Of a DNA stretch of 64,000 bases, positions 2,658 through 62,469 are shown one piece after another. The stretch is from Mytilus californianus. Its lineage: Eukaryota. How positions within the stretch are numbered: the stretch's first letter is position 1; every line of letters begins with the position of its first letter. The position numbers and the translations under genes are program-made. The stretch covers positions 112,220,001 to 112,284,000 of the forward strand of contig NW_026262690.1 in assembly GCF_021869535.1 (NCBI RefSeq). The letters are read 5' to 3'. Under the pieces are notes generated by a model. It was not told the origin of the DNA. It saw only the letters and a program-made list of their open reading frames with translations, and made no database searches.

Positions 2658-3035
2658 TACAGTTTGTTCTTATGTTGTGCTGCTGCAACACTTTCCCATG
2701 TTAAGGGAGGGTTAGCGCGTCCACAAACCCCCGCCTAATTCTGTATGTGTCTGTCCCAAGTCAGGAGCCTGTGGTTGTCGTTTGTTGCTATATATAATAT
2801 TTGTTTTTCGTTTATCGGTTTTGTACATAAATCAGGCGGTTAGTTTTCTCATTTGAATTGTTTTACGTTGTCACTGCGGGGCATTTTATAGCTTGCTATA
2901 CGGTATGGGTTTTGCTCATTGTTGAAGAATGCCGTACAGTGTCTTATACATGTAGTTGCTTACCTTCTTCGTTATTTTGTCTGTGGCGGAGAGTTTTCTC
3001 ATTGGCAATGAATCCGTTATCCTATCATTTTTATA
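2658..3035 (-). mobile_element. Non-autonomous interspersed repeat, family B (head aggagatgtggtatgattgccaatgagacaact)
   Basis: Reverse-complement match to copies at 23826-24198 and 53430-54010; class unknown. Confidence 0.75.
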
Positions 3036-4224
3036 TAGGAAAACAACTGAGCATCAGTTTGCATTTTATTATTCCATAATTTACAATCTATCAGACATAC
3101 AACAACTATACATATGTACAAAGATTGCAGTGAAATATAATCAACATGTTTATGTTAATATAAAATATACAGATGGATATTTTATAACTTAAAAATGTTT
3201 ATTTTCTCAATAAGAAATTAAAACAACGGCTTTTTTTTACAAGTTACAACTTTTTAATAGACAATGTGAACCATATTAAGTATTTTAGATAAAAATTGAC
3301 TGTTCCGTGTTAAGATTCTAAGATTTTATCTTACTCTATTTCATTATAATGGGAAGACGTTGCCTGTTTTTGTTAACAATTTGTTTAATTGAACGGACCA
3401 AGGGGGAAAAGGGGGGGGAGGTGTTAGAAAAATATTTAAAAAGATTTGTAAATATTTTATCCAATATCTAAGAACCATAACTTACGTAAAGAATCACTTT
3501 AAATGGTGTTGCTGGACAAAAATGAATATAAAAAGAGGAGTTGCAAAGATGTATGATACAATAATGTGAACAGTCTTGGATTTTTATCAATCACTTAGCG
3601 TATATCTATTCTGCACTTATAACCACACCTTTCCTACAACAATTTTGAAGAGATTTATTTATCTTAACCAGGCTTTAGTCTGGTGATGAAATAATAATCA
3701 AAATATCCGAGTTCTGATACTTAAACTAATTACATTAATTATTGTTTATATTTTAATGATTGTCTGTTTGTAATTTCAAAGTCAGTTCTGATGAAAATTC
3801 TAACAGACATTATTGTTTTAGGAGTATAAAACACCGCGAGATTCTGCGTAATTTAAGAGATTTGAAGGAAACAGGAGCTGACAATCACTCAATATGTAAT
3901 TACCCATTTCATTAAAGGCACCACCAGCCTTGGCATATCAGACAGCAATTATCCGTCGGAAATATCATAATATTTCTCATCAGACGATTACCATTATCTC
4001 ACAACAAATACATAGTTAATGTGATGAACAACAGGATTACATATTTCTCAAATGAATCCAAACAGTGACGTAATAATGCTATAATTTATAATGATATTTA
4101 ACAAATGGATCTGTAGGCGAAGTAATAGTGTTTGCTTGCCAACACCGTATGCTGTTTTTGTTCATCACATTGGAATCTTATATTATATATCACAGATATG
4201 TATGAAAGTTCCTAGTCTTTATTG

Positions 4225-10800: not shown

Positions 10801-13800
10801 TCAGAGTCCTACATATATTTTTAATGAAATTAACAAATTTCAAGGCAAGAATGTGATTCGATTGATAGAATTTTCATTTAAATGAAGAAAACTATGTGAT
10901 TTTATCCTATTTTCACCCCAGTTTGCACAAATACAGAATTTAAAAAAAAAGTCAAAAAAATAAACTTATCATCATAAGGGGAGATAATTCATGTAATTTA
11001 ATTTTACGCAGGAATGTACTTAAAAAATATTTATGTCATAGCAAGAAAAAAGTAAACGGTGACCTTATTTCTCTTTTGATTTTCTTAATTCAAACTTGTC
11101 ATAATTTATCTGATAATTCTGTCATTGAGTTTTCTTTCTATATAATAAAGCTGTTTTCCTTGTATGATTCTTAAAACATTTGTCGATTTTTTACAACCTG
11201 TTAAACGTATCTTTATAACAAGCTTGGTGACTTATAATTGTTATCATATTTGAGACAAAGCACGATATAAACTATATTTGGGAAAGAATAAAAAAAAATC
11301 TGTCATTTTCTGTTTAAACCCCATACTGCCTTAATGGAATTGCAGTATCACCATTTGTACGACGGTTGATCAAGAGTACTTCTCATTTAGAATTAAACTT
11401 TCGAACTTTACAAATTGACCAATAATTAAAAATTTGAAGTGTTCAATATTGACTGGGGCCAAGTACTATTTGGTTACAGTTCACACCTGTGCAAACTTTC
11501 AACACCTGTGGGATTATCGAGATAGTGAATATGATAACATATAGATTTATTTAATATGATGAAGCATGCTTTTATAGGTTTTTGTAAACATTGTTACTGA
11601 CGGTAATTCAGACGTCAGTCAGCCATATAACACATTCACACAAATTTTAGACCTGAGAACTAAATGAAATTATTTACGAGTTATATCATATACTCTATTG
11701 TCATGAACACCAAAAAACAAGATCTTTTTAATATTTTTTTTTTGTCTTTTTCTTATATAAATTCTGCTCGAAAGGATTTCATTTTTTTTTCGAATATGAA
11801 GTGATTGAAATATATAGATACGAAATTAATTCGTAAATCTTAATTCATTTTAATGACAATGAGGTGATACTTATTTATTCCATGTATTAAATAAAAATGA
11901 AATAGTTGTATGATGTTCCTATTCAAATGAAAAATAAACAAAAACAAACCATCCAATTGTAAAATAAAAAATCAAATCTGAAAACGATTTCTTTTGGTTC
12001 CATCCATCAATTTTTGGCAAATATCAATCCAATAATTTTTTTTTAATTATTCTGATCATTATCAATATAATAAATATACTCACAAAGGATTACTTTCATT
12101 CATCTGTTTTATGATGTATTGTAATAAATTGGCAATAAATCTTCTTTTTTTAGAAAACGGACAACCTGTAGAATAACCAAAATATGATTTATTTCTTATA
12201 AAATATACGTCAAATGAATGTGTATGTGAAAAGCAGCCTGTACTGAATGGTAGTTTATTGTGAATAGCAGCTTGTTGTGAATGGCAGTTTGTTGTGAATA
12301 GCAGCTTGTTGTGAATAGCAGCTTGTTGTGAATGGTAGTTTGTTGTGAATAGCAGCTTGTTGTGAATGGCAGTTTGTTGTGAATGGCAGTTTGTTGTTAT
12401 ATTTGCAGTTTGACGTGAATTGCAGTAATGTGGGAATTGCAGTTTCTTGTAAACTGCAATTATTGTGAACGGTAGTTATGTGTGAATGGTTGTTTCTTAT
12501 GAATAGTGAATCTTTATCAGTCTGTGTTGCATCACTTCACCCACAACCTATTCCGGTATAGAAGACAATAAGATAAGATAAGATAAGATAAATTGTATTT
12601 CCAATAGAGGACCCATTATAGGCATAGTCAGTACATTGATTTTTTATATCACATAATTGCAATAGACAATACACAAGAAAATAAAAAAAAAAAGAAATAC
12701 AACTGAAAAAAAAAACATGAAATATAAATTGAGTTAATAATACATGTAGTCACGTAAACCAGTATGTTTAGTGTTTATTATGATTGATTGATTGATTGGT
12801 TGATTTCACGGTGTTTAACACCACTTTCAGCACTGATGATGAAGGAAGCCGGAGTGCACGGAGAGACCATATGTAAATATTAAAAAATATTTAGGTACAC
12901 TATATTAAATACCTTTCATTTCTCGCTCTATCTTGATTTCATTACATTTCGGCAACTGCTTTAAGGCAGACGTCCCTCGGATCGGGTCACCTGTTGATTC
13001 TTTAACACACCAGCAATATCCCGAAGAGTTGTGACACTGTGCCTGTGACCAAAGACCAGTGTTTGTACAGGATGGGATAAATGTTCCACCAGTAGGATCT
13101 TGTCTGTTTTGTATCAGGGCAGCCTCCCTCTCTTCTATACAACTCTTTGTTTCTATTTAATACGATAATGTTACATTATAACATACGATTACATAATATT
13201 ATATATCATGTAATTTTTTTGAAATATTCATACATGCAAAAAGCAAAGCTAAATAGGCTAAATCTACGTAAAATAATATTTTCTACGTGGATTTGTTTTA
13301 CTTTTAAATGCCCTATAAGGTCTTGATCAATTCAGATAAACATGTTTATGAATAGACATATTCAAGTTAGGGTACCCACTTCTTGTACCGCTATGATAAT
13401 ACCTTTGAAGTTTAAATCACAATCTAAAGGTTAACTCTCTGAAAAGGTCAATTTTCTCTGGACCCGAGAGTGACCAGGTTATACTGTACTCAAATTTTCC
13501 CACATTGTCCAAATCAAATATAAAAGAATTAAATACATGATTTATTTGCCATAAAAATACTTAACTAAATCATTTTGGGTTGTTATGCATATAAATTATG
13601 TATTTTCTATCTTATGTAATATATCAAAATAACGTTAAGTTATTACTTTATATTCATGCCATATTCCTAAATCAAATTATATACAATATAAATCAACTGT
13701 GTTACAGATGAAAATATTACTTTACTATAGCAAAGACTGCAAGCAAAAGCTCTTGAATGCAAAATATTGCAGTAAAGTTTGTAACAAAACTATATATTTA

Positions 13801-16800
13801 AGTTTATTTCATGGCAGACGATAAAGATAACACGTTGTCGACCTCACCCACCTAGTTCCAAGTTTGTAAACATAACTGATACCATATTCGTTCTTGTAAA
13901 GAAAATATGAACTTTTTTGCTTGTCTATGTGACAACTATCCAAGAGAATCCAAATGACGTGGATTTAAACAACTATAGGTCACCCTACGGCCTTCATGTG
14001 GTCTTTTTAAAAATTTACTCGCATAGCAAAACAGCACCTTCTGGTTTTGAACAAATCGTATTTAGAAACGCATTTGTATCTTTTGAAAAAAATAATCCTT
14101 TACTAAAAGTGAAAAAGATTATTATAAAATTCTTTTAGTCAACAAAAACTCTGAAAAAACGAGAAGTTCCAGTATATATATATATATATTAGAGCAAAGC
14201 AAGAATAGGTTAGCTAAGGTAAAGTATAAATATCTTACTATCATCCGTGTCTGGTGGCGGGGTGTTACTAGGTTGATGGGGAATAAGCCCTTTTGGAGGC
14301 CAGGGTTTCCTTGACAAATCTATTAGGGAGGTCTTGCTTTCTGTGATACAAAGAAATTACATTCACTTCAACAAAGTCGATTCATTACAATACTATTACA
14401 GTGAAACCGGTCTAAACCGAACCTCTACGGGACTTTATATTTAGTTCGGTTTTGGCAGATGTTCGGTTTAATCAGGTTCACAACACATAACATTTGATAT
14501 GACTGGATTTTAGAGCATGCTTGATTTAGACAAGTTTTTGGTTTATGCAAGATTCGGTTTAGACAGGTTTCACTGTAATTAGTAAAAAAAGATAGCTTTC
14601 AATAATTCGTCACTGCCGTCGGAAATTCTATCAATATAAGTGAAATATATATCAAAATCAGGTAAAATGTAATTAAGTTTGAATTCTCTTATGCAAGTCA
14701 AAACATTCAATATGTGAATTTTTTGCATCTCCCGATTTTGTACTATATTAAACGCATTTTGATAAAATTCGATGCCAGTGGTTCCGTTTCGAACATAAAG
14801 TACTACAGATTAGCCTACCAAGTTTTTTTTCTAAAGAAAATAAGAAGTATGCTTTTTTTCTCACCAGTCAAGATTCAAATGAAGATTGTGTTTGTTTTCT
14901 TGAACATTAAATATTCAAACAATATGATAAAACTAAAAGTATTGTATTTGTCTTTTATTTGATATTAATTAAATGGTCAAACTTTAATGCTCCTTAATAA
15001 TACCACCTTTTTATAATGACCAATAGTCACACTCATTTTTCCTAACTTTAAAGAATGGTATTCATATTTACGAATATATAACTTCACAATTATATCTCCA
15101 ACATCCAAGTTGTGCTCTTATAATATTAAAACTTTACACGTATACACGAATTAACACCTAGCTCTAAAATACGAGCAAATTACATTATTTGTCTATTAGA
15201 GACTGTACTTTAGTCCACGTGTTGTGCTATGTTGTAACACGTTTGTAATTTGGGATCTGTAGATTCTGCTACTAACTTACATAAAAAATTCGAATCTGAC
15301 TGAATAACAAATTAAGTTACAAATGCGCGTAGCGCAGTGTGTTTTTCTGTCATCGAGCACTTTCCGAAATTTGAATTATTGTAATAGTAAAAACACATTG
15401 TTACATTGACTTTAAATGTTAATGAAGTATATAAAATGCGTTGAACTTTATCTTTTTTACGCGTTTCCAAATTTATTTTGCATGTGAAACATCAGATTTT
15501 CTTCGAACTTTGGAATATAATTTGAATTAGCGGTATTTTTGCGCCTGTCCCAAGTCAGAAACCTCTGGTCTTTGTTAGTCTTGTTGATCTTGTATGTTTT
15601 TTTTTATTTTGGTTCATTTATATGTTTCGGGGTTTAGCGTGGCGTCCATTATTGCTGAGCTGTATACATTATTGTTTGGGGGTCAGCTGAAACCCGCCTC
15701 CGGGTGCAGGATTTGCTCGTTGTGTTGAAGACCCATTGGTGGCCTTGGCTGTTTTCTGCTCTTTGGTCGGGTTGTTGCCTCTTTGACACATTCCCCGTTT
15801 CCATTCTCAATTTTATTAAACTGTTTTATCTAATAGGTATGAACAATAATTCCTATGAAATTATTTCAATTGAAGTCTGTTTTAAAAATCTCTTTTGGTC
15901 TTTACATCAATCCAATGTATCATAACAGTTTGGAAATATTTGAAAATGTTTCAACATATTTTCAGTATATTTTACAGAATATTCTAAAATACTGAATTTC
16001 AGATGCATGTCTTTGTATGTTTTTACTACTTTTAATTTGATACAGCGAGTGAAATAAATACGGACGACATTACTACCATATTTTCTTGCCATGGTCTATT
16101 TGGTTATACAACAAATGTGTACAGTAGTCATCGTTCAGTTCAACAATAATTATAAATGTGTAATATATATATAAGTGTGTATACATAACAATGTTCTATC
16201 ATATTACAAAATAAAGCTATTCAATGATAACTGCGACTAAACATTAGCTCTGCACAAAGCATGGAAGCTGCCTCAGAAGCTACACTCATAAAAATAAACA
16301 AAAAAATAAAATATTTCTTGTTATTATGCATGAGGGTCTGGGTGGGGTCCTCTAGTTCTGTTTTCTTTAATTTGTAAGCCTTTTTCTCAATTCTTTATTA
16401 TTTATTATGTTTACCTTTTTTTCTCAGCTCTTTTTTTTAGCTATTTATTCTGCGTGTTTTGCTCATTATTCTCTATTTTGTAAACTCCACCCATACCCTC
16501 ATGCATCATAAGGTAGTTAAAAAATTACTTTTGAAATTCAACATGTATAAATAATATGTTTTGAAACTATTGACGCTTAGAAATTGATTGTAATAAATAA
16601 AAAAAGAAAGGCCAAAAAATATATAATTGTTTCCGGCCTCCTGGCAGTTAAATATAGGGTACATGTAGGTAGATTGATAAAATCATTTTTTTTTAATAAT
16701 TTACATGTTATTTAGGAAAATATTCTGGGCTTAAACGGTGCTTAACCAAACTGTCTGGACTTGAAAAGATTAACCAACAATGTAAAAAAAATATGGAAGG

Positions 16801-19800: not shown

Positions 19801-22800
19801 AAAGAACGGACTATTTTTGTATTTTAGTAACATGTTCTAACCGAAGTCGTTCGTAGTCTGATAAATGTAATGACTAACATCAAGTAAAACAGAATGGGAT
19901 CATTATAACAATAAGGAAAATATAACTTACTGGTTTCCTGTCTTGTTCTTCCCCTGTTACCTAAATAACGGGAAAAACCAGTATGAAGATAAGGCATGCA
20001 TGCTAAACTTTTTCAAAATAATTGAACTTTGGCAAAGAAACCTATAAGTTAGTTTTAGGATAATTGTTCGATATATCTTTTTAAATCCTGATATCAATTT
20101 TTCAAAGAAATATTATTTTTCTTTACTAATCGTTTGGACAAAAATCGAATTTTTGCTCTTTTCTGACTGCAAAACAAGTTAAATAAAACTGCCGTGCAGA
20201 CATCAAAACATGAAGCGCCATTTGATATTCCATACACTAGTTAATAGAATCATACATAAGGTTATCGTTTTGTTACTCAAAAGTCAACTTTTATGAATCA
20301 ACTAGAAATTAGGATTTTCATCATCTCTAAAAAAAAAGGGGTCCACAAAATTTAAAGGAATAGAATTTAGAAGCATACAGTGAAACAAAAAGAGAAGACA
20401 TCAAGTAAGAGGTCTTGGTGTTTTTTTCAAAAATAGACAAGCATTCACACCAAGTGAAGCTTCGAAGCGTATTAGACAAGCTCTAAAGCGTATCAAACTA
20501 GCTCTAAGGCATATATCTAAAGCAACTTCATCATAAGTAAAGTAAGAAAATTAATTGACAATCAACAGAACATGCATAAAAAAATATTTCTAAAATAGTA
20601 CTTTGTTACGCACACCTTTTCCTAATGACTTGATCATCACATTACCTGCAGGACAGCGTTCGCATCGGGTAATTGTGTTTTGTCTAGTCCGATAGTTGAA
20701 ATTCGTGACTATTTGAACAAAATATAAATCAAATGTATGAAGCAAAAGGAGGCAAATGTTGATTTCAGCACTAATAATAATGTAAGTAGGACTTGTTGTC
20801 TAATTAAAAAAAAAAGTGGAATTTTGCATATGTACTTACCGTTTAAATCCACACCGAGACACGACGTCCATTCTCCCTTTTCTATCCGTTTATTTTGATC
20901 ATAATCACAGTATGAAATAAATGTTTTTGCACATGCCCTTGGCTTAATTACTTTTTTGACCATTTTTTTCAAAGAACGAACTTCTTTTCGTCTTAATTTA
21001 TTGTCTTTATTTCTATCTAGTTCTGAAAACTTCCACTCAGCAACACGTTTCTCACGTGAATTATCTGAATTATTTAAAGAATCCTCTGTTTCTGAAAAAA
21101 AGGTAAAACATTTTTTAGCAATATTTCATTTTTAATTTTTTTTTCACTGAAAATGATTAAGAAAAGATAAAACATATTTTTAGCAATATTTCATTTTTTA
21201 TTTTTTTTTTTTCACTGAAAAGATGAAGAAAAAGATAATCTTGTTTAAAATCCAATCGATTCGAATCTTAAAATCACTTTTATGTCAGTTGCGGAAAATC
21301 TGTTTTGCAGATAACAATGCATATGCTACAGAGATTCTGAAAATCCTTTCCCTCTTTTTACCATCGGCTTGTGACCGGATTTTGATTTTCAAATGTCATG
21401 ACGGGGAGCGACAAGACACGTGTCATTCTAAACAGGAATTGCTTACCCTTACGGAGAACTTGAGTTTAGTGTCGACCCTGATATTTATGAAGTTGCCGAA
21501 TTATAAGTAAAATTATTAAATTTTGCTTGTCTTGTCGTCTCTTTCTCCTAACAATTTTTAGAAACATTGAAAAATTCAGAATCATTTTAACACAGACGTT
21601 TAAAAAACTGAAGTGAAGTTATTCCATTGTGTAAATTTTGATTTTGTTCATGTTCAAGCTGGACAGTGATCCCCCTTTTCCTGTTCCATGATCAGTAAAA
21701 ACCGTATTTGACTTTGTTATTACTATTTTCAGCAAAAGCTCTACATAGTGCTGTCTCTTTATTCAATCTATGAATTTGGTATTTCATATTAATTCTACTA
21801 GTTGGAATGATACTACTCTTTAATACAACAGTTGATCTAAACTTCAATTAAAATCTTTAATTTCAAATCTACCAAAACTGGACTTTGCATCCCATGTGAT
21901 ACAGTTTTTCAACTTGATTTTAAACAGCGTGTTTTTTATTTGGTACTATGCTAAATGTTGTGTCCATTTGTGTGCTTAAGTGTTTTTTGTAAAATGAACA
22001 AAATTTTCCTTTTGAAACTCTGTCCATTAAAACAATTAACAGATTCACCAATGGCAATTGTTTGGAAATTATCACTAAAATATGTAAAAAAAAATTGACA
22101 TGATGTACACACCGTGTATAATCATAAATTTAGATGATTTTATTTTTCCCTTTTGCAAAACAGTTACCTACAAAGTATCTTCTTCCTATAGGGAAAACGA
22201 TGCTTTAGCGTTGATTTATGAATAATAAACGTATTTGTCGCATACAAATATCTTTATGCATATTGTAAAAACAAATAAATAAACTTAAATTGTTATCCTC
22301 GTATATAAATGATACTATAAGTGCCTATAGACAAACATCTGTTAGGTTACGTAACACTATACATATTTGATGGACATGGGAAAGAATTTGATTTACATTT
22401 TTGTTTGTTTGCTATTGAAAATGAAATGAAAAACGGCCGTAAACATCGCCTTCGAAGCGCACGTACTCTTCCTGCGCAGTCATAGTCGGTACACATATAT
22501 ACTAGCTTCTTTGGTGAAGTTTATAGCGCCCAGGCATGTACATTCAAATTGTTTAATGACGATTGGCGCTATAAATAGTGAAAACTAGAGTGATCGGAGA
22601 CCGTACAAGAAAAAGGGAAAATTTCCAACCATTCTATTACTACTAATTAATATTGTTTCACTTTTTAGATATTCTAATAACGCCATACATCACATAAACC
22701 ATTCCTCTATATTTTTCGGTCTTTTTTGTGCATGCTTCATTCTTCCTGCCATTTCAAGAACAAAAAACGTGTCAGTTTTCAGTGTTTTTTACATATATTT

Positions 22801-25800: not shown

Positions 25801-28800
25801 ATTTGTAGTTGGTAATGCTTTAAAGTATACTATATACAATACTTCTGAGATTGACCGTTGAGTGAAACAAATACAGGGGAAATTGGCCTTACCTCTTTAC
25901 ATCGACTTTCCCTTGTAATAAATAACCAGTATTTCTGAATGAAGAATTTTCCACACGAATAAAAAACTTTTACATGAAGGCTTTTTCCTCATGATCAAAT
26001 ACCCTTTTATGAAGGCGTTTTCATCTATAATGAAGAACCTTCCACAAAGGCGTTCCCTATAATGAAGTTCCTTACATAAACGCGTTCCCCCATGTAATGA
26101 AGTACCTTAAACAAAGGCGTTCTCCCTGTAATGAAGTACCTCGCAAGAAGATATTCAACCTATAATGAAGTACCTTATATGAAAGCGTTCCCCTATAATG
26201 AAGTACCTTCCATGAAGGCGTTTTCCCTGTAATGAGGTACCTTACATAAAAACGTTCTCCCTATAATGAAATACCTTGCATGAAAGCGTTCTCCCTGTAA
26301 TGAAGTACCTTACATGAAGACGTTCAACCTATAAGGAAGTACCTTACATGAAAGCGTTCCCCTGTAATGAAGTACCTTCCATGAAGGCATTCTTCCTGTA
26401 ATGACGAACCTTGCTTGAGGGCGTTCCGCCTGTAATGAAGTAACTTACACGAAAACGTTCCCCTGTGATTAAGTACCTCACATGAAGGCTTCCACCTGTA
26501 ATGAAGTACCTTACATGAAGGCGTTCAACCTGTACTAAAGTAGCTTACATGAAAGCGTCCCCCTGTAATGAAGTGCGTTACATGAAGGCATTCCATTTGT
26601 AATGAAGTACCTTACATGAAGACTTCCACCCTGTAATGTAGTTGCTTACTTGAAGACGTTCCCCTGTAATGAAATACCTTACATGAAGACTTCCACCCTG
26701 TAATGAGTTCCTTACTTAAAGACGTTCCCCCTGTAACGAAGTAACTTACTTGAAGGCGTCCCCATGTAATGAAGTACATTACACGAAGGCATACACCTGT
26801 AATGAAGAACATTACTTGAAGGCGTTCCGCTTGTAATAAAGTACCTTACTTGAAGGCGTTCTCCTCTGTAAAGAAGTACCTTATATGAAGACTTTCCCCC
26901 TGTTACATGACGTTCTTTACATGAAGACATTTCTCCTGCAATGAAGTACCTTACATGAGGACTTCCTGTAATGAAGTACCTCACATGAAGACTTTCTCCC
27001 TGTTACATGACGTACTTTACATGGACTTTCCCCCTGTTACATGAAGTATTTTACATGAAGGCTTCCCCCTGTAATGAAATAGCTTACATGAAGACTTTCC
27101 CCCTGTTACATGACGTACTTTTCATGAAGACTGTCCCCTTGTTACATGACGTACTTTACATGAAGGCTTTCCCCATGTTACAAATGTACATGACGTACTT
27201 TACATGAAGACTTTCCCCCTGTTACATGACGTACTTTACATGAAGACATGCCTCCTGTTATGAAGTACCTTACATAAAGACTTTCCCCCTGTTACATGAC
27301 GTTCTTTACATGAAGACATTCCTCCTGTAATGAAGTACCTTACTTGAAGACTTCCTGTAATGAGGTACCTTACATGAAGACTTTCTCCCTGTTACAAAAC
27401 GTACTTTACATGAAGACTTTCCCCATTTTACATGACGTATTTTACATGAAGGCTTTCTCCTGTAATGAAATACCTTACATGAAGACTTTCCCCCTGGCAC
27501 ATGACGTACTTTACATGAAGACTTCCCCCCTGTTACATGACGTACTTTACATGAAGACGTTCCCCCTGTTACATGACGTACTTTACATGAAGACTTTCCC
27601 CCTGTTACATGACGTACTTTACATGAAGACTTTCCCACTGTTACAAATGTACATGACGTGCTTTACATGAAGACTTCCCACTATTAAATGACGTACTTTA
27701 CATGAAGACTTTCCCCCTGTTCTATGACGTACTTTACATGAAGGCTTTCTCCCTGTTACATGACGTACTTTACATGAAGACTTTCCCCCTGTTACATGAC
27801 GTACTTTACAAGAATGCTTCCTCTGTAATAAAGAACATTTTATAAGGCTTTCATTCATGTAATGAATTACCTAACATGAATGATTTTCTCTGGAATGAAG
27901 CACCTTTACATGTAATATGATGGCTTTCTCCTTAAATAAAGCACCTCGCATGAAGGTCTTTTCTAAGTGAAGAGTTCCTTTGCATTTAATTCCCCATGTG
28001 AAGCCTTACTATAAGATATTTTCCCCGTTATGAATTACACTGTACCTTGCATTAAGGATTTCAACTATGATGAAGTTCCTTTACATTAAGGTGTTCCCCT
28101 ATAATGAAGTACCTTCACACGAAGGTGTTCCCCTATAATGAAGTACCTTTACACGAAGGCTTTTTTCCCTGTAATGAAGTACCTTTACATTAATGTGTTC
28201 CCCTATAATGAAGTACCTTTACACGAAGGCTTTTTTCCCTGTAATGAAGTACCAGAAATTGGTTTTCCTTCTTTGGTTACACACCAACAATAATTTGTAG
28301 CTGCATGACACTGAACGTCAACATAAGACCCATCTTTCTTACATTCTGGTATAAAAATCCCAGCTGTTGGCCGCCTGGCTATTTTTTGGGCTTCAGTTCT
28401 TTCTTGCTGACATTTTGTAGAACTTTTAGATCCTGAAAGTAACAGATTCTTTAGCCAAAATGAATTATTTACAAAGAAATAATTTATGCAAAAATAGTCA
28501 ATTTTTATACGATTTTCATCAATTTGATGAATTCAGGTACTCCAGGATCAAAACATTCAATCTGTATAACAATAAGAAGATGTGGTATGATCCACCAAAG
28601 AGATAGCTATCCACCAAAGTTCAAATGAAGTGGAAGTAAGCAATTATATTCAACTATAAGGCCTTCAACAATGAGAAAAACCTGGCTCTTTCTTGTTAAA
28701 TATAATCATTTGCTTTATTTCAGAGTAATTTTCATCGCTTGTCATATATGAAGTACTAGATTGACAATTTATTTCAGTGAAATAGTTTTTGTTTATACAT

Positions 28801-31800
28801 TTTTTTAGATTTATATATATTATCCTTTTTTTTTTATCTGAGTACTTATTTAAGAGAGTTTGTCCTTGTACTCGTACATCAATAGTTTCCAAATGCTTTA
28901 AAGAATTTTTAAAATCATACTGTTTTAATGTTTCTTTCTTGTTAGTGCATTTTTGTTTAAAATCCATTAATCTTCTGTTTAATAAACTAAATTTCGTTTC
29001 ATCTTTTTTCGATTATTTTCTTCTCATGAAAACAGACTTAACCAGGCTTAAATTGTGTATTATAATATGTATGATTGTTCCATTTTAACAGACAAATAAA
29101 AGAATGTGTCGTAAATATGTAAACACGAATTTTACCACACCCAACATATGTCTAGTTTAGTGATGAAACCTCGTTATTTGTAAAACGGAAACGAGATATA
29201 CGTCAAATCCGAACTCAACCCGTGTTTAATGTACCACAACCTAATTTAGCCTTGTGTTCCATTTCTATTGGTTTCGTTGAAGCATACTTCAAGTGAATGA
29301 GTTGACATCTCGTACGTGTCTTTTTTTCTTTTCACGTAGAAGCTTACGTTGTTCTTTTCACGTAGACGCTTACTTTGTAAAAAAAAATGGCAGAAGATAC
29401 CAAGTCGACGTACAAAACGCATAAGTCGAAGAGAAACTGACAATGACATGAAACTACAAATAAAAATGTGAGATATTCGAACTATACTTGTGTTTAGTGG
29501 AAATTCTTGATACATGTGGTATATTAATATTTCAAATGATTTTGTTGAATTATACCAAAGCAACTAATCGAAAACTTAAACATTTGTCAACATTTCTCTT
29601 CTCTACATTGAAAAACATGACTAGGGAACGACATGTGTCAACAAGGTCAAAACATGCCATCTACACAAATTTAACAATTCATAGCTTTGTGGCAGAATGA
29701 TTTCTATGAAGCCTAAAAACAGACACTGAATATTTATATACCTTTCACCTACAGTACTTCTCTGATATTCAATCTCGGGAACTTTTTGTCCAAGTATTTT
29801 TCCACTTGTAGAAATTTAAGAAAGATACACAAAACAATTTCACATTCAGTTATCATGGTTATGTCGTTAACAAAGCATTTCAGTTTAAGAAATGAAATCA
29901 ACACGTTATTAATTGCATGCGTCCGAAGCGCTTTTCTGGATTTACCTTCATCAGGAACGCTCAAAGCTGAATATTTGAAAGCCGAGGATGTATAAAAACC
30001 GAAACAGTTGCAGATATATATGACCAAAAAGTACCTAAACAAATAGCCAAATTCTTCGAAGGTCAACTTTGCCTGAGGGAGTTGAAACCTTTGTTTCTTT
30101 ATAATCTTAGAATTTATGAATGGACAATTTTAGAAAGGTTTGTTATAAATCCAAATAGTACCGAATTACTGACTACTGAGCTTATGATACCCTCGGGGAC
30201 CGATAGTTAAAAGAGTTGCCCTTTGGAATGTTTTCTTTTTCTTACTATAGATCTGTGGCAATTTAAATAGGTGTGATTATTGACAAAAACCACAAGGGAA
30301 GATCTACATGACTCTTTTGAGGAACTTAAGCTGTTGTGTTGCGGTTTCATTTTTTTCCCGAACGTCACTAGAATTGAAGTCATTGTCCTAGTCAAGTTGA
30401 TTGCAAAACGTATCCGGGAAAAGTAGACACGCTGATGCCTTTACTGTTTCCCAGAATCTTAATATTAAAATTTAGAGATGTTTACACAAAACTATTTGAA
30501 ACACGACAAAGTTAGATATATATCTCTGAGGGTTTGATTGGGGATATTCATTTCTATATTCTTTATTTTGTATGCCATTTTCTCAACTCATTAATCTCTA
30601 TTCTTTATATTTGTTTGCCCATATTTCTATGATTTTTATTTTTTACAAATCTTTCTCTATACTGTAAACTTTATCAGCTCCCTCACATATGACCGAATTT
30701 ATATAATGTCAAAATATGAACCTCTATATAAAATATTTAACCTCTCAATAATAATATTTCACAAGAAAATATATAATAAAATATAAATATGAAGACTTAT
30801 TTGCATCTAGTGCATAAACATTTAATAGGTAGTAAACTGGGTGTACATAAGAAATATTGAAAACCTATACAAACCACGAATAACATTGTAAAACACCTAC
30901 TAAATAATATAACTGACAAAATTGATGCTAATGGTTTAAAAATTAATTACAATTACACGATAAAAGTTGTAAAATTTCATGGATTGGTACACTACTTTAC
31001 ATCTTCTGAGTTAAATAGACCATTTAATTCAAACATACTCGAGTCAATAGAAAACATTAGCTGTTAAAATCGTATAAATCAGTTTATACGATTTTTTAAT
31101 CCTAAATCATTGAATACGGTGTTTTGATGGAATGCAGACTGAGACGGTAAAAACTACTTCAATTTGTCAAAATTTGTATACATACAATTTACAAAAACTT
31201 ATCTGCCTAATACACGGTGTATGCCATACATTAGTAACGTGAAAATAAAGGTTACCATACCGACCCTTTTTTTATTCCCGAATGAAATATTGTTATTTCA
31301 AAGTTCCAATCTGTAGTTGAGTTGTATCGTTTTTTTATTCCCGAATGAAATATTGTTATTTCAAAGTTCCAATCTGCAGTTGAGTTGTATCGTTTTTTTA
31401 TTCCCGAATGAAATATTGTTATTTCAAAGTTCCAATCTGTAGTTGAGTTGTATCGTTAACTGTCTGTTACAATGTATGGTATAAAAAATATCACCAAAGA
31501 TACTAGGCTTATAAAACATACGAACGTCCAGTAATAATTCGATGATATAACATTGTTTGGGCCTTTTAAGAGCATTATAATTGATTCTAAGGACGAAACT
31601 CGTTTACATTGCAGTATCAACAAAGAAAGTTTATTCCAATTTTTTGCATTTCCATTATATTCCAGATACATGTACAAAAATGTACGTGTATTCTTAAAGG
31701 CAGACGATACTGAAGAAATCGTACATTGAATTTTACTTGAAATTTTGAATACCTTCACGACTTATGTTTTGCGAAATTTCGATTTATTATTCGCTGTTTG

Positions 31801-34800
31801 AGGTTAAAAAGCTAAAATTTAACATTTTGGATGTACATTACAAGTAACTTAATGAAAAAAAAAAACCGATTAACTTGGATTCGTTATTATCTGTCCTTGT
31901 TCAAATGGTCTATTATACCGTATACCCTTAAATGCAATGTTCTTTAAAAACAATTTTGAAAAATTATTTTAAAAATTATTTGAAATCAGACCACCGACGC
32001 AACCTATTTACTAGTTTATAATCAGAAACATAATGTCTTTTTCACTTGACCTTTGACTTTGAGAAAGCAATCCAATCAATTCAAACGAACGAGAATGATA
32101 GCTGGATATATATTATGCATATGACCACTTGGGTGTCATTCTTTTAACACTGATTTATGTGGAGACGTATTTTCGTATCTTTTTATCTTGGTAAGATGCA
32201 TAGAGGCAAGCCAATTATACTCCAACAGCGTGTGAGGACCTGTTGTAGGGCAGAATTCATAATCCAGTGTTCAAAAATTGCACTTGGGGGCATATGCTCC
32301 CCCCTTTTTTTCTTAATTTGTTTCCTTCTATTTTTTGTGTTAGATAGAATGATAAGGAAAATAAATTGATATAAGTTTAAAACAAAATGGATAAAACATC
32401 TTTAAACATCTATCTTACAATAACTATCGTTGATATATATGTGCTGCCCCTCTACTCTTATTACTGTTATCGTGAGATTGGGGTATACGAAAAAGAAGGG
32501 AAAATATGTTGAAATATAAAAGAAAATTTAGTAAAAAAAAGTTTTTTAACACAAAAAAAAGAAACAAATTAAGATAAAGAGGGGGACCATATGCCCCCAA
32601 ACACCAAACATTTTTTTATTTAATGCAAATGTGCAAATTTCATTTTTTTTTTGCAACAAACGTAAGATATATCACAAGTTTTCAAAGAACATCAGGTTCA
32701 GAAAGCTATCATGGTGAAAGAAAGATACGATAAAACTTCGTACTTTATTTGGCCATGTAACTGCTTTGATTCGAGCGTCACTGATGGGTCATTTGTAGAC
32801 TTAACGCGCGTCTGGCTTACAAAAATATAAGTAACATGTTTTGTCGTCACAGAAGAAGCCTTTCAGAATGATGATAGAATGGTATGACGATATAGTTATG
32901 TGTAGATTTTCTTCTTATGTTTTCCACTGTCAATTTGCTAATTTTACAAGGTGAGGTCATTCTACAAGTATATTTTTTAGGTCAAATGTCTGTAGTCTCT
33001 CCAATTTTTTTTTTCGCGAAAAATACACCCCATAAAATTTAACTTGAGCGAAACCTATCAAAGATTGTTTCATGTAAAAATTATCCTTTTTATGATTTCC
33101 TTTCCTTCCTTTCAGATGATTACCGTATACTACACGTCATATTAAAAGTGGCGAATCCGGGGGGTCCAACCCCCCCCCCTTTTTTTTACGATCAATGCTT
33201 TTGAATGGGGACATATGGTTGGACCCCCCTTTTTAAAAGTGGCTGGATCCGCCTCTGCTTACAGTGCATCATTTAAGGAACAACAAATGATAAATGTATA
33301 TGACTGATTTCTCTAAGTCCAGTGACAACTATTACATATGTGTATACTCAATATATTCTATTTGTCGCTGGACGTTAAACAAATAACAATTAATATATAT
33401 ACTAAGATATCTGTTAAAAGAATGAAGCAAACAGTATTAAGCCACGGGGTTTTATTGCAGTATCCATTAAACACTCGTTAATTAAGCCAGCCCTGGATAT
33501 CGCTTAAAGTTTACCCACTGAACGCTCATTATCCAACCTAATCACGACTGACAAAATCTATCGTTAAATTATTTGGTACATGTATTTTTTATGAAAATAT
33601 AAAAAAAATATAAAACACCTTCTATGCAAACCGAATAAAAATATTGAGGCTCTAGAAAAAAAAGGTTTGACTTACGCTTGTCTCCTTTGTCTGTTTTGGC
33701 GTTTGTTGTTAATAGACAAAACAAAAGTACCATAACTTCTAAGAAATACATTTAAACTTAATCCAATTATACGGTGTCATCCGATTGTCCTCTTCAAGTA
33801 TGAATCAATGTTACTGTCTTATATTCCGAAACGTGCATATATAATAGACAACTAATAATTTAGTCATAAGTTTATATTAATAATTATTATATGTACATTT
33901 CTGCCAAAATCACACTGTGTGAAATCAGCATGTCCTTTAGCTGTTTATAAACGTTGTTGTGCCGCTTACGCATGACAATCCATTTCAATGGGAAATAAAC
34001 ATCATTTCATGCACAATATCAAATGCAAATATGCATGGTCTAACAATTAAAATATTTTGATAAAATTAAGTGTGATTATTTATGAAATGAACATCTGTAG
34101 AAAGGTAAAGATAAATCTGAGTAAGTCGAATAAGATCACGTTCAAGACACGTTAGATCTTTACAAATGTAATTTTACGTCATGAAGATTTATGAACTTGT
34201 TTTATTTTTTACCTTTCAGAATCTGTGGTCTTGTATGAACTGTATGCATCGACCAGGTGTGTGATGAATTTATACCAGATACATTTATAACTACCGAAAA
34301 AAAATTGTTTGCAAGTATTCTTTCGTTTTTTTCAATAAACCCTTAAAGTCTGCAGGCATGATTTATTGACAACCATACTCAGTCTGGTAACATATTAAAA
34401 TTCAGAATTTTGAGACTTAAAACCGTTTCCATATAAGATGTGTGAAATTTTGTCGCTCGGCATAAAAATGCATTTAACATCTGGCGGACTATTGTTCCTT
34501 AGCGGGGGTTTTGAAATGCTCACCTGTGTAAATAGGTATATTTATCGTAAAGTGTTTGTTAACATTTATAAAATCTACATGTCATGTTTGGGTAAATTAA
34601 GTACAATTAATTATGTAAGAATTACAAGATAAATATGTATCATACTGCAATATATAGTATACTGTTCTTTTATATAAAAACAGTGGCTATGACATGGCGC
34701 ATGTTTGCACCTTGTCAAAAGATCAAATTTTGTTCTCTTTGTGTCTTTTGATTACGTTTTTTTTTCATCAAAGTTAAACAAAATTATTAACTGATAATAT

Positions 34801-37800
34801 AACCACAGCATATCATTAGCAGATAATATGAACCTGCACTGAATTCTTGACAAGGTATCATTTTTGTAAAAAAGAAGGCGATAAAGAAGACAAAATAAGG
34901 ACATATGTTTTCAGTTTATGTAAAGAGAACGAGAGAGATGGAAAAATGAGGACATTTATTCAGTTTATGTAAAAAAGAGAAGGAGAGAAATTTCGACTCA
35001 TAACAGACAACCTTCTGACCCTTCAAAGCGTTGTTACAGGAGTCATGTGACTTGTAATTAAGCGTGGCACTCTCCGTACATGCAACTCTAGATTTAGCTT
35101 CCCTACTACTAGGACTGGACCAGCGGAGGAAACTTCAGCGTGTTGACATGACATTTTAGCTTAAATAAATCGGGCTTTTTAGCGCCAAAGTATAGCCCAT
35201 ATAAGCGCCAGATTTTTAACCCATTTCAGCGAAAAGTGAAATTGTCAATGCCGGTCCTTCTTAGCGACAGATGTTTTTCTTTATAGTAGAATAATAAATT
35301 TACTAGCATCAAAACATCACAATATACAAAATGTCATATCCATAAACATACAGCAATAAACTCAAATGTTTAATTTTAAATTTATGTCCAAGTGAACGTA
35401 CGAAATGGTTTTTTGATATATCCCCTGTACAGTGTACTGTTCGTAAAATTGTGATAGGAACTTTTTCCTAATCTTTATCTTATCCAAATAAGGGTGCAGA
35501 TTTATCGATATATCTAATAGTCTTCGCAAAACGTAAATGACTATAGGTGACGTTAGCCACATTTTGCACATTTGTTTCCTCTGCTTGTTTCAACAAAATT
35601 TATTTCCATGATTATTAGCATTATGCCCCCATTAATAGAATAACTGTTAACGGTTTTAGTATGGCGATTTCTATTCAACCTGGTAAGTCATCGCAAAAAT
35701 GGGCTATTGAAAATACAGGTGAACTTATTAGTCTTGCGCTGAAATGGGCTATAAAGCTTGTGCTAAAATGCACCTTAGTGGTTTTTAATTTTTCACTAAA
35801 ATTTCCTGGAAGTGACAGCGTATTTGTACATCCCGTTCAATCGAACGCTAAGTCAGAGCTATTTTTACTCCCGGACCGCAGAAGTCTAAGATGATATAGA
35901 TAAAAGGATATGAGTGGTATACACTAACACACCATATTACTATAACCCATGCAGTCAACCTTTGAAAAAAGTGTGTGATAATATTTTTCAAAAAGGGGGA
36001 AAATCCGAGAGGAAATAATTCATGCAAAAAGATACAAACAAAAGTCACATCTATTGATTACTTAGCTCGCATTTATATTTGGCAAATGATTGTTTTAATC
36101 AATTATTATTTTCTTAAATCACCTATACATGAGACAAAATATTTAAACTTCACAATTATCATGTTAAAGAATTTACAGCTACATGGACTGCTGTTTAGCT
36201 TTAAGTAAATTTCATATGTTACACTTATTTTAAAGTTTTTACTACTTGATACCAAAAAAATTTTTTGAAAAGAGACCACGAGTCATAATATGCAATTCGT
36301 ATGATTAAAATTGATATTTAAAATTCCAATCGGAGTATCATCTTTTGTCTTACTAAAGTAGAAAATGTAACTAAAATATCCTTATTTGGAGATCATAAGG
36401 AAGATCTGGACATAACAAATTAAAAATCCCAGTAATGATGGTTGCATATTCAGGCGTAACGCGGACAACGGCGACGTGAATGACAACACAAGGCAACAGA
36501 GGTGATCATAGCTTCGCTGGCTGGCGACACAGAAGGGCGCGCCCACACATACATGGGTGGTTCTGCCCCTAAATGAACCGTAAAAAATGGAAATAACATG
36601 TTAAAATATAACTGATTTAAACAGTATACCTCCAACTGTGAATTCATTTTTATTCGTAGAATACAAATTTTCGGGGATTTCGTGGGTGTAGTAGATATAC
36701 TAACTTAAATGTTCACTGAAATACAAATTTTTTATATGCTTGTATATTATAGACTTTGGCAAAACCACGAAAATAAATTTTTAATCCTTCCACCAAAAAT
36801 TGATATCCACGAAAATAATTAAATTCACAGCTGTTCAAAAATAGAATGAGTCAAATGTTAATACAATATACATACCTGAACACTTTCCTTTTTTCTGTAT
36901 GCTGACTTGACGTTTTTCGCAACGTTTGGCTTTCGTGAGATCACATTTAGATGCATATGTTATACCGTCTGACCCACATACGGGTCTTCGTTGTTTATTT
37001 GAACATTTAATTTTACAGTCAGAGTCTCTTAATGCCCTAAATAGTACCTGAAAATATAAAAAAAAACTGTTCTGTTATAAAGACTGATTAGATCTTACAT
37101 CTTATGTCTGTGTCGTACGTATACATCGTGTTCCTCGATTACAAGAACTCTAGCAAAGAAATGAATTTAGAAAAAAAATAACATATACGTCATGTGTACC
37201 GCAAATTTGGCGTCTGGTATTGTTTTTTGTTACATAGACCGAATCGGCTACTAATATGTGTGTTTCTACAAATAAAATTTCTTGACAGCGGTACCACTGA
37301 TATAACTATAGTCCGTTAAATGAATATTCCTTCTGGTTACTATATCAATGATGTAAATTAACGTTTAGGTGATAGCAACACAAAGATGGTTGTTATAAAC
37401 AAATATAAACAAAAATTCGTAAGGGTTCCGCGGAACCCAGTGTCTCGCCTACTTTTGCTGTTAATCGCAGGCTCAACAAATATGAATAAAATATTCCTCT
37501 CTATACTATCTTTTGATTGTAAGTAGCTTCTGTCCAAGATTGGTAAAAATCCTGGATAGTTTATGAATCTAATAAATGTTTTAAAAACTTAAACTGCAGA
37601 CTGTATGTAATGTTAACTGGAAGAAAAACTAAGTCCATTTATAAGTAAAATACGGAAAAAATGGAACAAAATTTTTAAAAATTTCCTTCTAGATACTAGC
37701 TTTTAATCATAAACAAGCTTCTGTCCATGTTTGGTACAAATCCAGGATAGTTTAAGAAAGTTATTAAAATTTGAAAAACTTTAACCACAGAGTGAATGTA

Positions 37801-43905: not shown

Positions 43906-46900
43906 TTTTCCAAAAAAGCTGGAAAAACTGTGAGTAAAAACCACACAAAACTAAGTTTATCTTTTTATTTTTGTAACAAATGTAAGTATAAAGGTATCTC
44001 GAGTAGGTAAAAAAACTATGCAATGTAGTCCTTCTTTAGATAACCTCCTAGTGAAGAAATGTCAAACTTGACATGTTAAGATAACAATCGTATGATATCC
44101 TATCATTACTGTAAGTGACTTTACGTTTTGTTTTTCTGTATGTTTTAGTCCAAATATATGACTAAAATTCTTACCATGTGAAGGGGTGGACCCAGCAACT
44201 TTTGAAAATGTGGTAGACTGATAAATCTTTATCAAAACGAAATATAGCAGGTATCAAGCCAGGGGACAGCACTCGTCAGTCTAGAAATGTGGGAGTACTA
44301 CAATGATATCCTTGGGAAATAACTATCAAGTCTTAATTTTGTTGAACTTTTTACGTATTTTCTTTTAAGTAATAAAATAGAAACTAGGTGTACTACGATC
44401 GAAACTTCTCCCTTTAAATCGCATTTAAAACTACATTAATCAGTCTTCCAATACCAGTTATATAATAGAGGACGACAAGTTGAAAATTACATGTATACAA
44501 ATGTAAAAACTAGAGAAGATACGAAGGGAAAATAAAAAAAAAAAACATCAGTCAAACACTATGACCAATAGGAAAGGACTACAAGAAAGACAGCAGTCCA
44601 TAAAACACAGCACAAAAAAAACTAAAGATGAAACAACACGAAGTCCACAAAAAGCCTGGGGGAAAGGGATCTGTAATCCGGAAGGATAAGCAGTTCTCCG
44701 GAAGGATAAGCAGTGCTCCGGAAGGGTAAGCAGTGCTCCGGAAGGATTAACAGTGCTCCGGAAGGGTAAGCAGTGCTCCGGAAGGGTACGCAGTGCTCCG
44801 GAAGGATTAGCAGTGCTCAGGAAGGATTAACAGTGCTCCGGAAGGATAATCAGTGCTCCGGAAGGGTAAGCAATGCTCCGGAAGGGTAATCAGTGCTCCG
44901 GAAGGATAAGCAGTTCTCCGGAAGGATTAGCAGTGCTCCGGAAGGATAAGCAGTTCTCTGGAAGTATAAGGAGTTCTCCGGAAGGATAAGCAGTGCTCCG
45001 GAAGGATTAGCAGTGCTCCGGAAGGGTAAGCAGTGTTCCGGAGGATAAGCAGTGCTCCGTAAGGGTGCTTCGAAAGGGTAAGCAGTTCCTGCTCTACCAA
45101 TAGAAGAATGTTTGATTCAGAATGCGAATTACACATTCATGAATACTAAATTGAAATCCATTTACTGATAGTACACATATGATACTGAATTTGAGTATAA
45201 GGAGGTTTCCGGAAATGTATGAATCAGGCAGCAATCCAGCAATACAAAAAAAAAAAAACAGAGAGAGAGAGAGAGCTTTGATGCGATGTCGTCCACCTGG
45301 ATTTGCAGGGTATATTAATAAATACGCAGTTATATCTGCTTGAAAATTTGGAAGTCATGCAAATCCAATGCACTGTTGAGAGCATGTAATGCTCTCAAAA
45401 TCTTTTTAACAACTATTGATACCTAAAACATCCTTATATGTTCAACATGCCTACAATGCCAGTTGTATTCCCAATGTCCAGACTATTCGATCACCACCAT
45501 CCATACACTTCAGGGTTGCTATATTGTATGATTGTCTCTATACCTAAATATGCAAGGCAAATGTGTGCCACTAGACGTTAAAATCATATAAAATTACCAC
45601 AGCAATCACTAAGTGTTTTTAATAAGATTTATAATTACTAGTAACATATTACACATTTGTTGCAAATATGATATAGAAATAAAATAATAATTAACTAGGC
45701 TATGGATATAACCACAAAACTGAATAAAAGTTTAAACTAAGAATAATCTACATAAAAAACATATGAAGATACACAACGGAAACCGAACATAGAATAAAAG
45801 TAACAACTATTTCCATGTATACGATTTTCTATTTATACATTGGCGAAAACCAGTTAGGCCAGGTTTTTCTTCTGTTTTTGTTTCGTATTATTTGTTTTAC
45901 TTGTTTTACCGTTGCTCTTTAGTAGTTATGAGAGTGTGGAAGGGGGTTTACAGAATAGAAAATAATGGGCAAAAAATATAAGGAATAGAGAAAAATGGAC
46001 CAAAAAAATAAAGAAGAGAGAGTAATGGGCAAATAGTATATAGAGTAGAGAATAATGGCCTGAAAAATTAATGAATACAGAAATGATGACCCCCCACCCA
46101 GACCCTCAGTTATAAACATTTTTTTTTTTTTCATTTTTTGTATTAAAAAAGGTAAATTACACTACAGGGAGGTAACTCTGTAAAAATCATCTGAACGTTT
46201 TAATCACGTTCTATTGTTAAGGAAATATTAAGCTTCTCAACGATCTAAATTAGTGATTGTCAAACTGCTATATATCCAATGAAATTTTTCCGATAAAGTT
46301 TGTGGTTCAAGTTTTTGAAATTCTAATTTTTTTTCAAAGGGTCAAAGTAAATATTTTGTAAAAATTTTATGAAAATTAAACGAGCCAAATTAATTTTAGT
46401 CAAGATGTTTGGTACCACCTTAAATTTGCAAGCCTTTAAACTGACTGTATTACTAATTTCAAACTCCACAGCTTCAATAAACTGGACTTTATATGTTTTG
46501 GACATGTAAGTTCTGAATGTCTATTCAATAAAAATAAAAGAAAAACTAAAATGAAAAGTTATAACTTGCTCCAAGTGAGACATTTAAGCGCTAATTTTAT
46601 TATTTTCCATTTGCTCCTTCGGATAGGAAAAAAAAATGGGGAACACTTTAATATAACATTTCAAGTAAAATTTTCACTAATGTTGTTATACTCTGTAGTA
46701 TTGCTGTGAACCAAAATGGCGGTAGAAAAACCCCGACACCTTGAATCTTCTGTACTAGTAAGACTCGAGTGTAAGAGAACAACCAGTCATGTTGAAGAGG
46801 ACAAGATAATTTCTTTTCGAAAATTCGAAATTCGATCAATTGATTGATTGATTGATTGTTTCTTGCATCCAGTGTCAACATAACTAGAAAGTCGTAAAAT

Positions 46901-61600: not shown

Positions 61601-62469
61601 TAAAACGTAAGGTTTATCTCTTGCAATGCAACACGAGGTAAATATAACTTTTATACACTTGCATACAGAGACTTCGGTGGAAACATCGTGATCCAATGTG
61701 CCATATAAATGTTATGAGACCACGAATGACTTTTATTTGAAAATGGAGAGATTAGAAGAACAAGGCTTCCATTTGTATTACAGGGGTAGTCAGTTAATAA
61801 GTTAAACAGATGTGAAGAAACCATAAAAAGGAAAGTTTACGACTGATGCATGCTCTATATGCTTGAAAATTGATCTATCACAAAGCGATTTATTAATCGG
61901 ATTATTACTTACTTGGGCAACATGAATCCAGTCATTCCGTTTGTTGATTAGTCGAGTGTTTGGTTTTGTAAGTGTTATTGACTTCCCACTTTTTGAATTA
62001 CGTTTGGTAGTTTTGTTATTACATTTTTAAAGAGTGTGGATTCGCATGACAGGTGCTGCATGCATAGCAAAAGACATTTTTTTTTTAAGTTCATGCAATT
62101 TCCTTGTTCATTGCTTTGATTTGTATATTTTTAATCGATTTATGAGATTTGAAAATCGGTAAACTACTGTTGCTTAATTTAAAAAAAAGAAACTTGCAGC
62201 TCAAAGTCTTTGTCTGTTATTTCAATGTTTTTTGCATGACTTGCATTTTATCCCATTGCCCAACAAGTCCCTGAAAGTGGGTCCGTCGGACGTCAGAGCA
62301 ATAGTTCACTACTATATATGATATCCTTATTTGAATAAAATAGTGCCCTTTTCATGGCTTCAGTTGTTGGGTTGGTGTTTAATTGCCATGTAGTCCTCTT
62401 TTCCCCACCAAAAGAGTTGATTCGGATAAAACAATTTGGTCATCCCTGGACTTCCCAGGTATAGATGTA

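Follow-up and report, generated by a model that had tools for sequence, protein, structure and literature searches.

The analysis of a 64,000-nucleotide stretch of the Mytilus californianus genome (contig NW_026262690.1; hereafter the window, whose positions are used throughout) reveals an internal alternative 5' exon in a SMOC/Pentagone-like gene that lies on the minus strand from 58757 to 4228. According to the reading preferred here, to which a probability of roughly 0.8 is assigned, transcripts that extend upstream to at least 34052 start translation at 33751 and splice from 33676 to 28432, which produces isoform X7, a form without the Kazal domain. The canonical mussel isoform has the domain order signal peptide-Kazal-TY-EC-TY-EC, in which TY denotes a thyroglobulin type-1 domain; in the alternative isoform, a 26-residue N-terminus stands in place of the canonical signal peptide and Kazal domain (90 residues). 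An earlier reading of the DNA letters, referred to below as the sequence-only reading, had proposed that an alternative 5' exon exchanges the N-terminus and removes the follistatin-like (FS)/Kazal module, and this core proposal is borne out by spliced contigs, by RefSeq isoforms in three Mytilus species and by a block of conservation that ends at the donor.

The alternative exon is located within an intron of 8.4 kb that separates the Kazal exon from the first TY exon (TY1). Its coding part comprises 76 nt on the minus strand (33676-33751) and ends in phase 1, as seen in the sequence, in the tblastn match of residues 1-26 of XP_052106722.1 (P0283) and in contigs of sequencing runs X1, X13 and X4. 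The ATG at 33751-33749 opens MYFLEVMVLLFCLLTTNAKTDKGDK, and the last base of the exon (C, 33676) begins a split Arg codon; of the encoded residues, the first 18 form a signal-like peptide, MYFLEVMVLLFCLLTTNA, and KTDKGDK follows ahead of the split codon. An in-frame TAA at 33754-33752 stands immediately before the ATG, and given this adjacent stop the exon has its own start codon, with no in-frame reach from upstream exons. At the other end, the exon closes at 33676 with the donor AGC|GTAAGT (GT at 33674-33675, minus strand; joint 28431/2-33675/6), which is kept in M. edulis and M. coruscus. The acceptor of the TY1 exon at 28432 reads ttcag|GA behind ...ctgttactttcag, and the frame past 28432 continues SKSSTKCQQERTEAQ..., the start of the thyroglobulin type-1 domain. 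The split codon is therefore composed of C (33676) and GA (28432) and encodes Arg, and the frame runs on into SKSSTKC. The ATG, the hydrophobic stretch, the cleavage motif, the C|GTAAGT donor and the phase compatible with TY1 had all been described in the sequence-only reading and are present at these positions, and the peptide it gave is that of the annotated protein. The exon region is single-copy across the 1.65-Gb genome, and an origin of the exon from a repeat or transposon was ruled out on this basis.

A 341-base query around the exon is partly present in 20 runs from 11 studies, and four runs (X1, X13, X4 and X22; these run labels are separate from the isoform numbers) were compared across 28150-34100. 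Runs X1, X13 and X4 come from three studies with two organism labels, and the RNA label of each is a guess. The exact joint from 33676 to 28432, for which the sequence-only reading had called for junction reads, is present in contigs of these three runs (depth 6.3 in run X1, 11 in run X13 and 11 in run X4). It skips the 5243 nt from 28433 to 33675, an intron that contains several highly expressed dispersed repeats and whose ends are GT..AG on the gene strand (CT..AC as written on the plus strand). Of the 600 nt of the run X13 contig, 216 belong to the TY1 exon and 233 to the alternative exon, and the contig extends past TY1 into the exon that follows. In the three runs, intron bins are mostly at zero depth and exons are covered, and the contigs total only 73-143 Mb as compared with the 1.65-Gb genome, which indicates that these runs behave as transcriptomes.

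The depths in these runs also indicate how the exon is used. The TY1 contigs of run X1 (depth 24.1) and run X4 (depth 57.5) stop exactly at 28432, and the alternative-exon contigs overlap them by 29 bases; these ends mark a branch in the assembly and therefore indicate that a second upstream exon also joins at this position. Relative to the TY1 exon, the contig depth of the alternative form is approximately one fifth (11/57.5 in run X4) to one quarter (6.3/24.1 in run X1). In run X13, the alternative join is the sole assembled form, with both exons at depth 11, whereas in the stranded raw reads of run X22 the TY1 exon is covered approximately 5.5x, entirely in the orientation of the minus-strand gene, and the alternative exon has 0 reads. 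The use of the alternative exon therefore differs between samples, and it changes independently of the use of the canonical start. A word search for the translated TY1 exon returned two short fragments only, neither of which contains the alternative N-terminus.

The predicted product is already present in the databases. XP_052106722.1 (RefSeq isoform X7, 514 aa) begins MYFLEVMVLLFCLLTTNAKTDKGDKRSKSSTKC, its first 33 residues are those of the predicted peptide, and tblastn places it with 100% identity on 33751-33676, followed by the exons that both isoforms share; the protein is identical to the predicted Kazal-less product, and the database entry is a computed model. The same N-terminus opens isoforms X9-X13 of M. 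edulis, isoform X8 of M. galloprovincialis and the 2018 models VDI51191.1 and VDI51192.1, with the changes T15S and D24N or K22T. Paired isoforms differ in length by 64 residues (579/515, 569/505, 545/481, 544/480, 537/473 and 578/514), which matches a swap of 90 canonical residues for 26. The sequence-only reading had regarded the domain switch as undescribed for mollusc SMOC, which does not hold for databases, where XP_052106722.1 and mollusc analogues are annotated, and holds for papers to the extent that a full-text search of the searchable literature found none on a Kazal-less mollusc SMOC isoform. The Kazal-less isoform is thus known at the annotation level, and the prediction is a correct call rather than a discovery: from the raw sequence, the alternative coding first exon was predicted with the correct phase and with a product whose N-terminus is exactly the annotated one. 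With the isoform already in RefSeq, the value that is left lies in regulation, age and function rather than in existence.

In the M. edulis (L002) and M. coruscus (L003) orthologues of this locus, as in M. californianus itself, the ATG, the reading frame and the GTAAGT are intact. The sequence-only reading had made its exon depend on conservation of the ATG or donor, and both are kept. Between M. californianus and M. edulis, the intron separating the Kazal and TY1 exons mostly aligns poorly or not at all, and a 1.7-kb block around the exon aligns. Identity in 100-nt bins is 90-97% from 34650 to 33651, except for 83% in 34350-34251, a bin that coincides with an insertion in M. edulis; it is 70-89% upstream of 34650 and drops to 57%, 45% and 64% (45-69% overall) right past the donor.

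Upstream of the ATG, the contigs are collinear with the genome to 33907 (run X13), 33956 (run X1) and 34052 (run X4), with no upstream join, and the documented 5' leader of the alternative transcript therefore occupies 33752-34052 on the minus strand (301 nt as a minimum extent). Beyond it lies a conserved block (34053-34750, minus strand) with 83-97% identity to M. edulis, as compared with the 45-69% just past the donor, which is a candidate promoter or further leader. Within this block, TATAAA motifs at ~34290 and ~34274, a CRE-like TGACGTAA at ~34185 and a donor-like AAG|GTAAAA at ~34213 are fully or nearly conserved in the three Mytilus species. A well-formed acceptor, TTTATCTTTACCTTTCTACAG|ATG, is also present upstream of the leader, with its AG at 34097-34096, a branch point and a polypyrimidine tract, and it is conserved as CTTTACCTTTCTACAG|ATG and CTACAG|ATG; from this acceptor and the donor-like site at ~34213, a tiny leader exon and a 117-nt intron are conceivable. 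The alternative exon would have a promoter of its own, for which the conserved block at ~34100-34750 is the most likely place, and the TATAAA pair and the CRE-like motif appear to be better candidates for promoter elements than the TATAAGA that the sequence-only reading had noted upstream. That motif does exist at ~33823-33817 but is ruled out as a promoter element: it lies inside the transcribed leader, which contigs follow to 34052, and it occurs only in M. californianus through a 3-nt deletion, where M. coruscus and M. edulis read TATAACAAGA. The contigs labeled organism B contain a 3-nt insertion that matches the TATAACAAGA versions. The sequence-only reading had also seen no strong acceptor here, which is contradicted by the site at 34096 and by an acceptor-like, pyrimidine-rich AG within the alternative exon itself (TGTATTTCTTAG|AAG, AG at 33740-33739).

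The alternative N-terminus may direct secretion. The call was made by simple rules: the hydrophobic core VMVLLFCLL has a best 9-residue Kyte-Doolittle mean of 3.42, as compared with 2.54 for the canonical signal, and TTNA|K satisfies the small-residue rule, with T at -3 and A at -1 before K19. In the proposed mechanism, an internal promoter in the conserved block would drive a transcript that starts at or upstream of 34052. The first coding exon would supply a new signal peptide, the first 18 of the 26 residues of which look cleavable, and splicing onto TY1 would give a secreted protein with both TY-EC units and without the Kazal/FS module.

Several observations weigh against this interpretation. 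The assignment of the three junction-bearing runs to RNA is a guess. On the 5' side, the contigs stop at three places (33907, 33956 and 34052), and the conserved acceptor at 34096 may leave space for an upstream non-coding exon or for entry from a canonical exon. The leader contains 11 upstream ATGs as compared with the ~5-6 expected from composition, so they are not depleted, and the last upstream open reading frame (uORF; ATG at 33780) overlaps the main ATG, which makes efficient scanning-dependent translation of the long-leader form less likely. Translation from that form may be weak or regulated; the main ATG has an A at -3 (context AAATGT). Conservation of the 76 coding bases does not exceed that of the leader, and the two changes in M. 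edulis, T15S and D24N, are both non-synonymous, so there is no specific coding signature. In addition, the putative signal peptide has a Glu and lacks a positive charge in its n-region.

One alternative is a non-productive or regulatory transcript, i.e., a spliced RNA that is poorly translated or targeted for decay and yields little or no Kazal-less protein, arising either from an intronic promoter with a uORF-laden leader or from a conserved "poison" exon entered through the 34096 acceptor. The 11 upstream ATGs, the uORF that overlaps the main ATG and a leader as conserved as the coding part all favor such a transcript; the conserved, well-formed acceptor favors poison-exon entry, and the in-frame stop before the ATG would truncate any frame that comes from the Kazal exon. 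However, three Mytilus species keep the ATG, the hydrophobic segment and the exit in phase 1, none of which a poison exon needs, and a join into 34095 is seen in none of the contigs. The same solution is annotated with clean signal peptides in oysters, scallops and snails, in Biomphalaria within the same intron, and the alternative join is the sole assembled TY1 form in run X13. A non-productive transcript is considered unlikely.

In a second alternative, the acceptor-like TTCTTAG|AAG would turn the 63 nt from 33738 to 33676 into a cassette exon that is spliced in frame between the Kazal and TY1 exons and adds EVMVLLFCLLTTNAKTDKGDK to a Kazal-containing protein. The 63 nt keep phase 1 on entry and exit, and the M. 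coruscus protein CAC5359980.1 and its relatives contain ...KGKCS-EVMVLLFCLLTTNAKTDKGDKR-SKSSTKC. The three junction-bearing contigs run collinear through 33739 for a further 170-310 nt, however, RefSeq models of three other Mytilus species begin at the ATG rather than as a cassette, and there is no obvious reason for placing a hydrophobic insert of 9 residues between two extracellular domains that are rich in disulfides. This arrangement is very unlikely as the explanation of the exon, and it could coexist as a minor form. In CAC5359980.1 and its relatives (589, 599 and 601 aa), the last 63 nt of the exon (33738-33676; L003 27525-27599) are drawn as an in-frame cassette through TTCTTAG|AAG, which is probably a prediction artefact. 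Finally, a chance open reading frame or an artefact, either coincidental intron sequence or a joined form that derives from DNA as a processed retrocopy, could be suspected in an AT-rich sequence in which ATGs and GTAAGT-like strings are common and with runs whose type is only guessed, but it is effectively refuted by the exact junction in three runs, by the single genomic copy, which leaves no processed retrocopy behind the joined form, by the conservation footprint that ends at the donor and by annotation in several genomes.

The internal alternative 5' exon has counterparts in other molluscs. An alternative hydrophobic N-terminus is joined just before the first Cys of TY1 in Magallana gigas isoform X14, Crassostrea angulata isoform X10, Argopecten irradians isoform X9 and Mizuhopecten yessoensis isoform X8, and the same Kazal-less design is found among gastropods, both planorbid and land snails, in Biomphalaria glabrata isoform X5 and in B. 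pfeifferi, Bulinus truncatus and Bradybaena similaris models. As in Mytilus, the remainder of each protein is common with the Kazal-containing isoforms, whereas the N-termini outside Mytilus are only loosely similar, e.g., MYFLEVMVLLFCLL as compared with the oyster MYYVGLLKLIFTLCVLL. The intron position outside Mytilus was tested at a single locus, that of Biomphalaria (L005), in which exon 1 occupies 3001-3132, the Kazal exon 14414-14590 and the alternative exon 45346-45454, and TY1 begins at 61614; the intron is the one that holds the exon in Mytilus, and the Biomphalaria exon likewise closes in phase 1 (G|GTCAGT) and is preceded by an in-frame stop. Common descent of the alternative exon across bivalves and gastropods is likely, and convergence is less probable. 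The broader proposal that an ancient internal promoter and signal-peptide exon are common to bivalves and gastropods, so that molluscs would express Kazal-plus and Kazal-minus SMOC forms in a sample-specific manner, is more tentative, and its chances are placed slightly below even.

For the oyster alternative isoform P0010, an exact-sequence lookup found no gene record, and the oyster Logan fragment P0384 was rejected as evidence on the 5' end because it is a C-terminal piece. The Logan transcript contig P0016 (2599 nt), from a more distant animal, contains a complete 504-aa open reading frame for a Kazal-less SMOC-like protein that starts MYFIARLYLSLALLL... and has 46% identity in EC1, which hints at Kazal-less forms outside molluscs. 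Other N-terminal variants were also observed. The cephalopod isoforms P0006, P0205 and P0214 (Octopus vulgaris isoform X7, Argonauta hians isoform X7 and a Logan transcript) have a signal peptide and a Kazal-like module and are without TY1 (Kazal-EC-TY-EC), the converse of the Kazal-less form. In M. edulis isoforms X8 and X13 (P0274 and P0279) and in oyster P0010 and P0382, TY1 is cut after ...IPECK and leads straight into the basic linker, which indicates an alternative donor inside the TY1 exon that would destroy the TY fold.

The remaining exons of the gene are shared by the two isoforms or belong to the canonical one, and all are on the minus strand. XP_052106715.1 (isoform X1, P0287) has every exon within the window at 100% identity by tblastn, from 58757 to 4228. 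The canonical first coding exon, with the MNLSIWTLSWIFILFYCVRA... signal peptide, lies at 58659-58757 (tblastn, P0287 residues 1-33, 100% identity), and canonical exon 2, the Kazal exon that the alternative isoform bypasses, lies at 36874-37050 (Pfam Kazal_2, E = 1.3e-12 on 36838-37074; tblastn, P0287 residues 32-90). The TY1 exon, entered in phase 1 from either upstream exon, occupies 28217-28432 (Pfam PF00086, E = 6.7e-22; tblastn; contigs cover 28216-28432). The other shared exons extend over 4228-24540 and encode the basic linker, EC1 (20838-21113), linker segments, TY2 (12908-13153) and EC2, which reaches 4228, as identified by tblastn with P0283 and P0287 and by the Pfam SPARC_Ca_bdg and Thyroglobulin_1 models. 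In a Pfam scan of open stretches, TY matches are found at 28206-28532 and 12908-13156, with Thyroglobulin_1 E-values on the exons of the window of 6.7e-22 and 1e-18, and a SPARC-type EC match is found at 20712-21125 (SPARC_Ca_bdg, E = 1.4e-13). An EC-exon query matches full-length relatives twice each in an exhaustive profile search, and the full-length protein P0003 has two TY and two EC stretches. The gene belongs to the SMOC/Pentagone family of the SPARC/BM-40 superfamily. A separate TY-EC gene that begins at the alternative exon was ruled out, as all downstream exons are common to both isoforms, and a tandem gene behind the second TY at 13 kb was likewise ruled out, as that domain comes from the TY2 exon within this Pent-type gene.

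Repeats are found in the introns on both sides of the TY1 exon. Four stretches upstream of it in the gene (28548-28746, 29742-30338, 32727-32925 and 33125-33323) have contig depths of hundreds to ~10,000, on either strand and in each of the four runs, and their many consistent base differences and loose ends identify them as copies of dispersed repeats that are abundant and expressed. The last part of the TY1 exon, including the donor (...GTSLQGKKPSCKGKS, window 28139-28253), is tandemly repeated many times in the downstream intron, and such repeats are also present in M. edulis (L002 31280-33300) and M. coruscus (L003 32220-34150).

The consequences of the internal exon can be considered in terms of what is known of SMOC domains. 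It is through their TY and EC domains that SMOC/Pentagone proteins shape BMP gradients. According to PMC10464977 and PMC5360445, TY contacts BMP and EC binds glypican/heparan sulfate in worm, fly and frog SMOCs, and PMC5360445 describes SMOC as both an antagonist and an expander of BMP signaling. The N-terminal follistatin-like/Kazal domain is found in some SMOC family members only (PMC10464977). The Kazal-less isoform should accordingly be expected to keep the core BMP and glypican/heparan-sulfate activities and would differ in the FS/Kazal contribution and in the place and time of its expression; it would be a functional, separately regulated variant. If this is true, the still-unexplained FS/Kazal module would be a switchable part of a BMP/heparan-sulfate regulator.

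Vertebrate SMOC1 and SMOC2 are members of the same family, secreted matricellular proteins composed of FS, TY and EC modules. Their order, as given in PMC10464977, is FS-TY-(SMOC-specific region)-TY-EC, with one EC only, unlike that of the mussel protein, and for buffalo Smoc-1 two transcript variants are reported in PMC2235864. Insect homologues have ~30-35% sequence identity to the mussel protein, and to our knowledge no FS-less Pent isoform from an internal promoter is known. In domain order, Drosophila Pentagone (Pent/Magu) is the same as the canonical mussel isoform, with FS/Kazal followed by two alternating TY and EC domains (PMC10464977). A parallel to the alternative isoform is offered by C. 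elegans SMOC-1, a natural SMOC without FS/Kazal (PMC10464977). It consists of TY and EC only and still binds BMP via TY and glypican via EC (PMC10464977), which indicates that a Kazal-less SMOC can be functional. The two proteins differ in that the worm protein has one TY-EC unit and the mussel isoform has two, and in that the FS domain is missing from the C. elegans SMOC-1 gene itself, whereas in the mussel it is lost only through the choice of first exon. A conserved and separately used Kazal-less mollusc isoform would amount to a natural experiment in deleting the domain and would bear comparison with C. elegans SMOC-1.

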